Shown here: one piece after another, positions 7,087 through 10,000 of the stretch
How positions within the stretch are numbered: position 1 is the stretch's first letter
Layout of the letters: every line of letters starts with the position of its first letter
Assembly (NCBI GenBank): GCA_002269645.1
Contig: NIVC01004417.1
Span: 1-46,762 of the forward strand
Reading direction: 5' to 3'
Source: Macrostomum lignano
Taxonomy: Eukaryota
DNA length: 46,762 nt
Made by a program: the position numbers and the translations under genes
Notes under the pieces: generated by a model
Seen by the model: only the letters and a program-made list of their open reading frames with translations
The model's database searches: none
Told to the model about the DNA's origin: nothing

Positions 7087-10000
7087 TTAGTCTGAGTCTG
7101 AGTCGACCACGCGGTTCCGTTCGGCCTGCAGCCACTCGGAGTTCTCAAATAGTCGGGCGAAAATACGATTATTCGTGGCGCTGTCCTTGCCGAAGTACTG
7201 CACCTGAATCTTCTGTCTGACCCTCAGCTGCAGGCTCTTGGCGGTTTTGATCTGAAATAAACAAATAGAGATTAAGTCAACGGAGTAACTAACTGATTAA
7301 CAAAATAATTAACTAACTATCTAACTAACTAACTAACTAACTAACAAACTACTAACTAACTAACTAACTAACTAGCTAACGAACTGACTGACTAACTAAC
7401 TGATTAACTAACTGACTAACTAACTGACTAACTAACTAACTAACTAACTAACTAACTAACTAACTAACTAACTAACTAACTAACTAACTAACTAACTAAC
7501 TAACTAACTAACTAACTAACTAACTAACTAACTAACTAACTAACTAACTAACTAACTAACTAACTAACTAACTAACTAACTAACTAACTAACTAACTAAC
7601 TAACTAACTAACTAACTAACTAACTAACCAACTGACTAAATCACTCACTTTAGTTGGGTCCGAGTGCAGACTATTGTTGGCGATGAAGAAGACTTCCTGA
7701 CGGCCTTCAATTTTGACCCAGACGCCCTCCTTGGTGATCTTGATGATCTCGGCCTCGTAAGTTTTGCCATATTCCAGCTTGTTCCTGCTGCGCCGCCTGG
7801 CAAGCCACAGGACGACTTTCCTGTACACCCAGTGCAGGATGATGTACAGGAAGCCAAGGACGGACCCGATACCGACGGCGGCAAATAAGCCGGCAAAGTA
7901 GCTGAAGCTGAGCGGGATTTTGTCAGCCGGATTGATCACTGATGTCGGGCACCGGTTCAGGCCGAAGTACTTCTTCTCAAGATTCTGATACTCGGAATAG
8001 CGAACAGAGTTAAGAAACGACCTTACTTCGTTAGTGAACGGGTAGTTCTTGCGAATCATGGTGGTCTCGTACACCACCTCTTCAAGCGGCCCGTATGTCT
8101 TCAGTACGCAGTCTTTGGTCTTCTGATAGTTAATTGTTGTAGCAGAATCGATGTAAACATAGCGATCGTTGGATTTGAGTGTTTCGACAGCGGCTGCGGC
8201 TGACGGCTGTAGCATGTCTTCTGGCCAATTCGCTTTGGCTGTCTGCACCAGATTCGGCCAGCGTCTCTGCACGGTTGTGTAGGCGATTGAGTTGTTCCAA
8301 AATATGGCTCGATAAGATGTGGCATTTTGCAACTCGGTGATGGTTGTGAACGGAACCGACTCGTCCGGCTTAACTAAAAACGGCACCAAGTTGCTCACGT
8401 AGGTGGTCATGTAGAATAGCGTGGAAAACCACAACAGCAGGGTGAATAAACGAGCTGACGGCTTGCGGGGCTCTGTCTCCACCTTGGACATCAGGAAGGA
8501 GCTCAGTACAAGGAAGAATGATGCCATGAAGCTGAACATTGGCTTGTCGCTTTTATTAGGACTGATCTTGTCGCTGACAAACAGCGTGACAGACAGTACA
8601 ACCATGGAGAACATGATGCTAATCCATACGTACCAGGAGAACGGATAGAATACATTGAAGAAGTCCAACGGATGAATCGTCCTCTTGAGTAGCATTAGCA
8701 GGCCAGACTGCACCAGATTGATTGACATATCCGCCGCCTGAAGTCGGTCCGACAGAGCAAACATGAAATTTGCCGACATGTCTGCCCTCTGAAATTTTAC
8801 AAAGAGCGATACAATATGATTGAGAAATTCTAGCGATCGAGGGGGTCTTTATTCAAAATATTCAAACTTCAAACTGCATGAGTACGAGCAGGCTTAATCG
8901 AACTGATGGGGCACTTACATTCTCGGTGAGGTATCCCATCATTCCAGTCCAGCTTCCGTCTGGCCTTTTCGAACCGTAGCTCCCATCTTCGGCAAGCAAA
9001 ATCTCGAATTGAAAGCCGAGATTCCTCTGCATCAGCAGGATGAGATCGTAACTGATGCCGGTGAGTTCTCCGTTCAAGTTTTTGTATAGATAAGGCTGGT
9101 CCTAAAAGCAAATATATAAATTCATTGTTGTACTTCTGCTCTAAGGGGCGTTCGTTTTCTAGCTATGTAGCTAGTGCCTATGAGCTATTGAAAGGCCACT
9201 TCCAATACACCAAACTGATTATTCAACTCTTCCAAGGCGCTTGGGATTCACAAAGGTGTTCACTCAGCGTCCTTAGCGACGCCTTCGACTGTTGTCCCCG
9301 ACCGTCACCAAGGACGCAGGCTGGTTGCCATAGCGACAACTATACGCCTGATGTTGAGCCAGCATAAAAGCGCCGTGCTCTGTGTACCAGACAACATCGA
9401 AGTTAGTACTCGACTGTCTTCTGGCTGACGAAATCATCATAGACACGGCCTTTGGATTGCCAAAATATTGCTTGGGCATATTTTTTGCATACTTTTGCAT
9501 ACTTAGTAAAACAGCTTTTTACTTTCGGTTCAGTAGCAAGGAAGAATACGTAAGCTTTATATATATTTATTTATAAAAATAAAGGCAGCTGAAATAGCTT
9601 TGATAAGTTTAGAAGCCCAAGCTTGCAGGCGTAAACAACTTGCTAATTGGTTCAGCAGTAATGTACATTAGCCAGTCCGCTGAAATGTACATGGCAGCTT
9701 TCGGCTGGAATTCCGAGAAAGGCAATAAAAATCGGGACGGGTTGGGGGATAGGGTGGAAAGGCGCAGTTGGGGGGTTTAAGCTGGGGCGGGGGTAGCGCA
9801 AGCAACCGCGGTACTAAAGGGACCAAAATCCTATATACTAAAAATTTGTAAACTAGAAAAGAATTCTACTGTTTGTTCTATCGGGCTAAATGTCCTTTTA
9901 AGCTTACCAGAACACCAACAAATCGAATCAGAGAATTTTTAATCGTTGTGGTCTTAAAATAATCCACTTTGTAGGCGGGCGTAGCGTTCTGTATCCACGT

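Follow-up and report, generated by a model that had tools for sequence, protein, structure and literature searches.

The tails of known ionotropic glutamate receptors (iGluRs) are intrinsically disordered and act through short motifs, such as PDZ ligands. In the cation channel TRPM2, a C-terminal cytosolic NUDT9-homology domain, which is derived from a mitochondrial enzyme, binds ADP-ribose. Here, we describe a minus-strand gene of the flatworm Macrostomum lignano that codes for a divergent iGluR subunit with a tail predicted to fold as an S1 domain, and we trace that domain to metazoan polynucleotide phosphorylase (PNPase; PNPT1). The gene lies in a contig of 46,762 nucleotides (NCBI GenBank assembly GCA_002269645.1, contig NIVC01004417.1, positions 1 to 46,762), the whole of which is called the window. 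A model reading the letters of the window without database searches had proposed this combination of domains, and we refer to its proposal as the original prediction.

Described S1 domains provide the second point of comparison. RNase E contacts RNA through F67 and K112, with help from F57, and F638 of PNPase is needed for function (PMC3832800). The S1 domain of human PNPT1 captures stem-loop RNA and also contacts the Suv3 helicase and other S1 domains (PMC11851098).

The Receptor Core

The Lig_chan family (PF00060) of Pfam recognizes the window protein at 73.8 bits against a cut-off of 30.8 bits. Among the sequences of the Protein Data Bank (PDB), GluK5 (7ks0), GluN1, and GluA2 match across the ligand-binding domain (LBD) and the membrane segments M1 to M4, with E values from 1e-28 to 1e-22. 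(The PF10613 profile was scored for relatives only, namely P0003 and P0006, which are described below.) The alignment with GluK5 covers about 375 residues (E = 3.6e-28), placing the exon at 9101-8919 and the large exon downstream of it on GluK5 residues 441 to 830. It brings into register an EDGxYG…GSWTGM motif, the ligand-binding Arg ("alsdR" in the window protein and "itaeR" in GluK5), M1, the pore loop, M3, and M4. The M3 gate motif, YxxNLxxFL, reads TTYVSNLVPFL in the window protein and SSYTANLAAFL in GluK5. On the strength of this homology, the gene product is a divergent iGluR subunit, and by analogy, it would assemble as a tetramer. The tail should be cytosolic, as the original prediction had it, because it lies behind M4 and a strongly basic stop-transfer linker, RKVVLWLARRRSRNK; both iGluR topology and the positive-inside character of this linker argue for that orientation.

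The S1 Tail

The 112-residue tail retrieves a single protein from the PDB sequences when searched with phmmer, namely human PNPT1 (E = 1.7e-7), and the match falls over the PNPT1 S1 domain. A profile built from 12 family tails brings human PNPT1 to an E value of 9e-17; the next S1 protein, Rrp5, is 12 orders of magnitude weaker (1e-4), and bacterial PNPases follow at about 0.009. AlphaFold2 (AF2), given the family tail alignment without templates, produced a model with a mean predicted local distance difference test score (pLDDT) of 88. This model begins with a long helix (model residues 2 to 35), comprising M4 and most of the linker, and continues through five strands (residues 45 to 53, 57 to 62, 68 to 72, 96 to 104, and 111 to 115, with the sequences TYEAEIIKI, GVWVKI, VFFIA, KIQVQYFGK, and NRIFA, respectively) to a short C-terminal helix. 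When the model was compared with PDB structures by Foldseek, all 31 of the 31 matches at an E value of ≤0.001 contained S1-type OB domains; they include bS1, eIF2alpha, human PNPase, Rpb7, RNase II/R, and Tex. Human PNPase aligns with 36% identity and a root mean square deviation of 3.0 Å across 80 columns, close to the identity of about 38% that the original prediction had given. As modeled, then, the tail is a five-stranded antiparallel OB barrel of S1 topology, and the claim that it is an S1/OB fold related to metazoan PNPT1 has been upheld by phmmer, the family profile, AF2, and Foldseek.

Nothing else of PNPT1 accompanies this domain. The Pfam scan of the window protein gave neither an RNase PH nor a KH domain, and with tblastn the window as a whole is also free of such similarity. 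Queries with PNPT1 proteins, full-length or partial, match the window only at the tail, at 7254-7153, and the window therefore contains no PNPT1 gene; the original prediction, which saw no KH or RNase PH domain upstream, had likewise held that this is not a PNPT1 gene. We accordingly rejected a PNPT1 gene in the window, joined to the receptor by read-through or mis-join, given the missing RNase PH and KH similarity and the unrelated neighboring genes. We likewise rejected the idea that the protein is a PNPase enzyme, since it has no RNase PH or KH domain, although some databases still call its relatives "PNPT1."

Structure of the Gene

The whole gene occupies 7087..14206 of the minus strand in about 10 exons, and the protein P0001 maps to exons throughout; the boundaries of the N-terminal exons are approximate. 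Exon 1 (14092..14206), read directly, carries the ATG at 14206 and the signal peptide MLSPASLLCLLLLALCPLPQPGSA.... The exon for the first LBD lobe (DQPYLYKNLNGELTGISYDL...GSWTGMMGYLTEN; 8919..9101) has AG/GT boundaries with phase 0 at both ends and aligns with P0003 residues 360 to 418 and GluK5 residues 441 to 490. The large exon (7649..8788, 1140 nt) supplies the remaining LBD, M1, the pore loop, M3, the S2 lobe, M4, the linker, and the first 43 S1 residues, and direct reading confirms a single open frame from M1 to the S1 segment. The junction between M4 and S1 is thus contained in one exon, open in frame throughout, exactly as originally claimed.

Within this exon, the M4 transmembrane helix, FAGLFAAVGIGSVLGFLYIILHWVY (7823..7897), aligns with M4 of GluK5 and is helical in the AF2 model; the basic juxtamembrane linker (7778..7822) mostly prolongs that helix. 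Strands beta1 to beta3 of the S1 domain, LEYGKTYEAEIIKITKEGVWVKIEGRQEVFFIANNSLHSDPTK (LEYGKTY...HSDPTK), follow at 7649..7777, a segment that holds the W and F equivalent to F57 and F67 of RNase E. A phase-0 GT-AG intron (7252..7648) then interrupts the domain, with its donor GTGAGT reading from 7648 and its acceptor, ...TTTATTTCAG, ending at 7252. The last exon therefore begins at 7251 (7251-7087); the phase given by the original prediction was correct, and its placing of the exon start at 7252 was one base off. This exon codes for the S1 loop and strands beta4 and beta5, IKTAKSLQLRVRQKIQVQYFGKDSATNNRIFAR (7153..7251), and for a predicted C-terminal helix with an acidic end, LFENSEWLQAERNRVVDSDSD (7087..7152). 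The 21 residues of the latter (7152-7090) finish in ...DSDSD and are not conserved in the family; the stop codon, TAA, occupies 7089-7087.

The public model of this gene, UniRef A0A1I8HFD1 ("PBPe domain-containing protein," 783 amino acids), has a tail 100% identical to ours in the HMMER scan and skips the exon at 9101-8919. Because that exon has clean splice sites and aligns with relatives and with GluK5, the protein must be longer than 783 residues. Our rereading gives models of 844 or 875 residues, depending on an ambiguous donor near 10615 or 10522 in the N-terminal half; the length of 863 residues proposed earlier was not reproduced, which leaves the finding unaffected.

The introns of the gene are rich in tandem repeats. 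The intron within the S1 domain is nearly all (GTTA)n microsatellite (7286-7639; (TAAC)n, about 89 copies, when read in the other direction), and others contain a 17-mer in about 16 copies (10230-10510), (TATC)n in about 58 copies (12021-12254), and an imperfect 18-mer extending over about 1.2 kb (12813-14073). These repeats give rise to spurious long open reading frames (ORFs) on both strands.

Origin of the Tail

Introns also link the tail to PNPT1. In the following, a slash marks the intron. The S1 region of PNPT1 from the spider Caerostris darwini has introns at LTEE/EAPKLEYG (phase 0), VEI-R/DNG (phase 2), and LSHKK/IQH (phase 0), and the Spirometra member of the receptor family has introns at RQRAQ/NKLEFG (phase 0), VEV-E/DNG (phase 2, at the same codon position), and SKTN/RQG (phase 0). 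In the M. lignano paralog, they stand at MASSS/KVNSRLEF and PDPTK/KMT, both phase 0; the window gene retains a single one, at HSDPTK/IKT (phase 0). Two positions are therefore identical in place and phase between the receptor family and PNPT1, and the third, at the domain boundary, differs by a few codons. The position retained in the window gene is common to the M. lignano paralog and spider PNPT1, and the Spirometra intron is no more than one residue away from it. Such sharing points to genomic exon shuffling, and an origin of the tail as a retrocopy, which would carry no introns, was rejected on the same evidence.

We propose that the last three exons of PNPT1 were copied at the genomic level to a site 3' of the exon encoding M4 of an iGluR gene, in which case the boundary intron would be the seam of the capture. 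The event would date from the last common ancestor of Macrostomorpha and the parasitic flatworms at the latest. Afterwards, the seam intron and the phase-2 intron, two of the three inherited, would have disappeared from the window gene, and it is because of this loss that a single exon now holds both M4 and the beginning of S1. The original prediction had already spoken of domain capture; to that idea the shared introns add the route, and the fusion turns out to be no lone curiosity but part of a conserved flatworm family.

A neighbor-joining tree over 76 columns agrees with this derivation, grouping the tails and PNPT1 against the S1 domains of Escherichia coli in 195 of 200 bootstraps. By homology and intron position, the S1 tail is descended specifically from metazoan PNPT1. 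Taken jointly, the existence of the fusion, its fold, its origin, and its conservation are conclusions in which we have very high confidence.

A Conserved Flatworm Family

An exhaustive HMMER scan of 1.84 billion representative proteins with the tail (E ≤ 0.001) produced 18 matches: the protein itself, 11 relatives in which S1 follows M4, 4 true PNPT1s (a nematode and a spider sequence among them), which are the next best after the family, and 2 spurious hits. In the 11 relatives, all channel-like, the S1 segment sits at the extreme C terminus, right behind an M4-like hydrophobic helix. The spurious matches, P0004 and P0013, were discarded as repeat proteins with similarity confined to a short stretch. 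Of nine relatives scanned with Pfam, five (P0002, P0003, P0005, P0009, and P0012) reach the Lig_chan cut-off. Word-indexed searches with the tail and with the 434-residue C-terminal half found no homolog, and a word-indexed search with the tail alignment found five short environmental fragments only. Look-ups of P0009 and P0015 gave no record.

Named members comprise an M. lignano paralog (PAA64932.1), proteins of Schistocephalus solidus (P0005/P0022), the receptor gene of Spirometra (locus L005), a 1263-residue model from Rodentolepis nana (P0012), a Hymenolepis microstoma protein named "glutamate receptor ionotropic kainate 1," and one from the monogenean Cichlidogyrus casuarinus named "S1 motif domain-containing protein." All the named sources are Platyhelminthes and include four cestode genera and one monogenean; further members come from environmental sequencing runs. 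Thus, the family appears to be restricted to flatworms among the named sources, and environmental members may lie outside Platyhelminthes. Since both Macrostomorpha and Neodermata have the fusion, it must go back at least to the ancestor that they share.

Among seven full-length members, mean pairwise identity is 32.8% in the S1 domain, 26.7% in M1 to M3, 24.3% in M4, about 17.5% in the ligand-binding lobes, and 16.3% in the N-terminal domain, and family members differ by at most about 4 residues in the length of the linker between M4 and the barrel. No other region of these proteins is as well conserved as the S1 domain. The retention of the fusion in many diverged paralogs and orthologs, with S1 as the part most conserved, means that the combination is functional.

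Individual members deserve comment. The tail nearest to that of the window protein by identity (41%) belongs to P0003, a coral-associated, intronless relative encoded by a single ORF of 857 residues (L002; GC content, 0.51) in run ERR14224705, a long-read metagenome of Tara Pacific; its source animal is coral associated. P0003 and P0006 (857 and 861 residues, from Logan contigs L002 and L003) were considered as mRNA, which was rejected for P0003 because ERR14224705 is a DNA metagenome; both contigs are devoid of a poly(A) tail. The Spirometra isoform P0027 has an 18-residue exon (L005, 55628-55681) in the beta3-beta4 loop, at the conserved phase-0 intron, and this loop therefore tolerates insertions.

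Several public models need care. The S. solidus receptors are automatically named "Polyribonucleotide nucleotidyltransferase 1," evidently owing to the S1 tail. The M. lignano paralog model P0019 (974 residues) continues into what appears to be a downstream seven-transmembrane receptor gene, and the R. nana model apparently fuses two neighboring receptor-S1 genes, which suggests tandem duplication in hymenolepidids. Models of the M. lignano paralog also differ at the M4/S1 seam (L004, 4900-5600), where one reads HRM/KVNS and needs a GC donor and the other reads HRMASSS/KVNS with a GT donor; the difference may reflect alternative splicing of the linker or a model error. Full-text literature searches, including one for both Pfam accessions jointly, found no description of an iGluR with an S1 domain, in line with the original prediction, which had known of none. 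The sequences themselves are nonetheless already public under automatic, inconsistent, and partly wrong names, so that the architecture is implicitly catalogued and apparently undescribed.

Putative RNA-Contact Residues and Proposed Role

The S1 domains encoded by E. coli pnp and rne (NC_000913.3) were aligned with the family tails. The Trp of the tail motif GVWV falls on F638 of E. coli PNPase and F57 of RNase E, and the second Phe of FFIAN falls on F67 of RNase E. At the beta2 position, 9 of the 12 tails have Trp, Tyr, or Phe, and at the beta3 position, all 12 have Phe or Tyr; PNPT1 has Met or Leu at beta2 in all sequences seen and also at beta3, except in the nematode. A basic residue stands ahead of beta5 in two-thirds of the tails (8/12) and is Arg in the window tail. 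With aromatic residues at both beta2 and beta3, the putative RNA-binding face of the receptor tails is thus more canonical than that of the parent PNPT1 domain.

We propose the following model. In the tetramer, each M4 would continue as a short basic helix carrying one S1 barrel, about ten residues beneath the inner leaflet of the membrane. The barrels would expose an aromatic and basic surface, as do S1 domains that bind single-stranded or structured RNA, and the likeliest role for them would be to bind, at the receptor, RNA from the cytosol or a comparable polyanion. Such binding could anchor mRNA or ribonucleoprotein (RNP) particles at the receptor or could alter clustering, trafficking, or gating. 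We give slightly better than even odds to the overall reading, that of an exon-shuffled iGluR-S1 gene that is intact and functional and whose tail binds RNA or a polyanion at the receptor. Considered separately, RNA or polyanion binding by the tail at the receptor has a probability that comes close to even and stays just under it. That flatworms possess a receptor family that binds RNA directly through a membrane-proximal S1 domain, thereby anchoring or sensing mRNA or RNPs, is a tentative proposal with the balance somewhat against it.

Several observations weigh against this reading. The canonical S1 His (His34 of the PNPase S1 domain) is Ala or Pro in the tails, and Ala in the window tail, so the match to the RNA-contact pattern is partial; a polar residue stands where Phe19 would be. 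Net positive charge is missing from five of the 12 tails (net charge, -3 to +12; isoelectric point [pI], 5.2 to 10.4), and the aromatic residues are presumed to be exposed from strand periodicity only. Of the two Pfam families to which the original prediction had pointed, Lig_chan is clearly recognized and S1 (PF00575) is narrowly missed: the tail alone scores 19.1 bits and the tail in context 15.7 bits, against a cut-off of 22 bits. Every family member tested falls under that cut-off, with P0002, at 20.2 bits, being the best relative. The phylogeny that the original prediction suggested is similarly divided, for the tree that joins the tails to PNPT1 recovers the tails as one clade in only 6 of 200 bootstraps; it therefore does not prove a single capture, and monophyly is argued from shared characters only. 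Finally, exact look-ups of the 844-, 875-, 431-, and 387-residue models in the sequence collection found none of them present, and no transcript evidence was found.

The protein contacts of the parent domain make a role without RNA plausible, which is a further point against the model. In the most developed of the alternatives, exaptation has turned the S1 barrel into a protein-protein module that has lost RNA binding; its partner would be a scaffold, a trafficking or cytoskeletal protein, a helicase-like protein, or another tail, and the module would replace the functions of PDZ ligands and disordered tails. Precedent exists in human PNPT1, in which the D713Y substitution in S1 weakens the contact with Suv3 with RNA affinity unchanged and the closed state brings the three S1 domains into contact (PMC11851098). 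The lost His, the wide range of pI, and the Pfam scores under the cut-off would also fit such a module. It is harder to reconcile with aromatic residues at both RNA-stacking positions, unlike in most PNPT1s, and with a basic residue before beta5 in 8 of the 12 tails, a pattern more typical of nucleic-acid-binding OB folds; moreover, no partner for the tail is known. We therefore consider a protein module unlikely, though still a serious competitor. A sensor comparable to that of TRPM2, in which S1 would bind a cytosolic ligand (an oligonucleotide, polyphosphate, or an anionic lipid head group) and gate or modulate the channel, strikes us as quite improbable. A short linker of conserved length and predicted helicity would pass movement to the gate-adjacent M4, S1 is more conserved than the pore region, and TRPM2 itself offers an analogy. 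Against these stand the position of M4 at the periphery of the pore domain in iGluRs and the poor preservation of the M3 gate motif in several family members, in which channel activity is therefore uncertain.

The remaining alternative is that the fusion is an artifact or lacks a function, whether through chimeric assembly, an error in the gene model, or a neutral capture of recent date, now in decay. The missing transcript evidence for the window gene, a public model with at least one error (the missing exon), and a long microsatellite intron of a kind prone to assembly problems would all be compatible with it. Yet M4 and S1 lie within one open exon, and the same architecture recurs, with open frames and 25 to 41% identity, in independent assemblies from at least six flatworm species as well as in environmental contigs. 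This conservation across the family rules out an assembly chimera and a neutral or decaying capture, so that we regard the artifact as effectively refuted and its probability as negligible.

Surroundings of the Gene in the Window

Downstream of the receptor gene, an aldehyde oxidase/xanthine dehydrogenase-like gene (window 1-5400, minus strand) shows matches to [2Fe-2S] Fer2_2, a/b hammerhead, and molybdenum cofactor (MoCo)-binding domains. On the plus strand, a glutamine-synthetase-like gene lies at 16590-19140 (Gln-synt_C, 84.7 bits), and exons similar to the first ARM-repeat domain of KNTC1 lie at 33660-35530. A GC-rich island at 19900-21400 (GC content, 0.63) has overlapping ORFs on both strands, one of which (20872-21369) has no Pfam match; it is probably a repeat or a remnant of a mobile element. 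A 1-kb block at 26000-27000 with extreme purine skew (GC skew, 0.78; AT skew, 0.68) is probably a purine-rich satellite.

Significance

A folded domain of a nucleic-acid-binding type, placed about ten residues below the membrane, represents a design different from that of the disordered tails of iGluRs. This design is conserved from macrostomids to tapeworms and monogeneans, and more strongly than the pore. It appears to define a lineage-specific class of membrane proteins, one with members in the parasitic cestodes and in monogeneans. The fusion is also a clean case of exon shuffling, in which a nuclear gene for a mitochondrial enzyme gave terminal exons, together with their introns, to a channel gene. 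Public annotations of these genes are partly wrong, with "PNPT1" names, exons absent from models, and merges with neighboring genes.

If the tail does bind RNA, it would form a direct link between a channel and RNA localization or local translation, without adaptor proteins, and would provide a simple, testable model for how receptors are coupled to local RNA metabolism. M. lignano is amenable to transgenesis and hence suited for testing this model.

Comparison with Known Systems

Above the membrane, and within it, the window protein resembles canonical iGluRs. It has a signal peptide, a long N-terminal region, a two-lobed LBD with the Arg, the series M1/pore loop/M3/M4, and the gate motif, and it is about equally far from the kainate, NMDA, and AMPA classes. 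Unlike canonical iGluRs, it shows no ANF_receptor match in its N-terminal region, and its C terminus is a predicted folded S1 barrel.

With the S1 domain of metazoan PNPT1, the tail shares 36% identity to the human sequence over about 80 residues, a five-strand OB topology, three intron positions, and the motifs L-E-[FY]-G, Y-x-A-x-[IV], G-V-x-V, P-N-x-x-L, and V-x-Y-F-G-[KR]-D. The proteins otherwise differ, as the window protein is without the RNase PH, alpha, and KH domains of PNPT1, and the receptor S1 is mounted on a membrane helix, is predicted to be cytosolic rather than mitochondrial, and would be present in four copies rather than three. Moreover, the receptor tails have Trp, Tyr, or Phe in place of Met or Leu at the equivalents of RNase E F57 and F67, and they carry a two-residue insertion after beta3.

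RNase E of the bacterial degradosome likewise has an S1 domain at the inner face of the membrane, an aromatic pair (F57 and F67), and, ahead of beta5, a basic residue (K112). The relationship is distant (profile E > 0.01), however, and RNase E is no ion channel but a nuclease that an amphipathic helix anchors. The likeness to TRPM2 is one of analogy only: there, too, the nuclear gene of a mitochondrial enzyme supplied a channel with a cytosolic domain at its C terminus. The two channels belong to unrelated families, and the domains captured and the ligands are unrelated as well; gating by S1 would be an extension of that analogy only.

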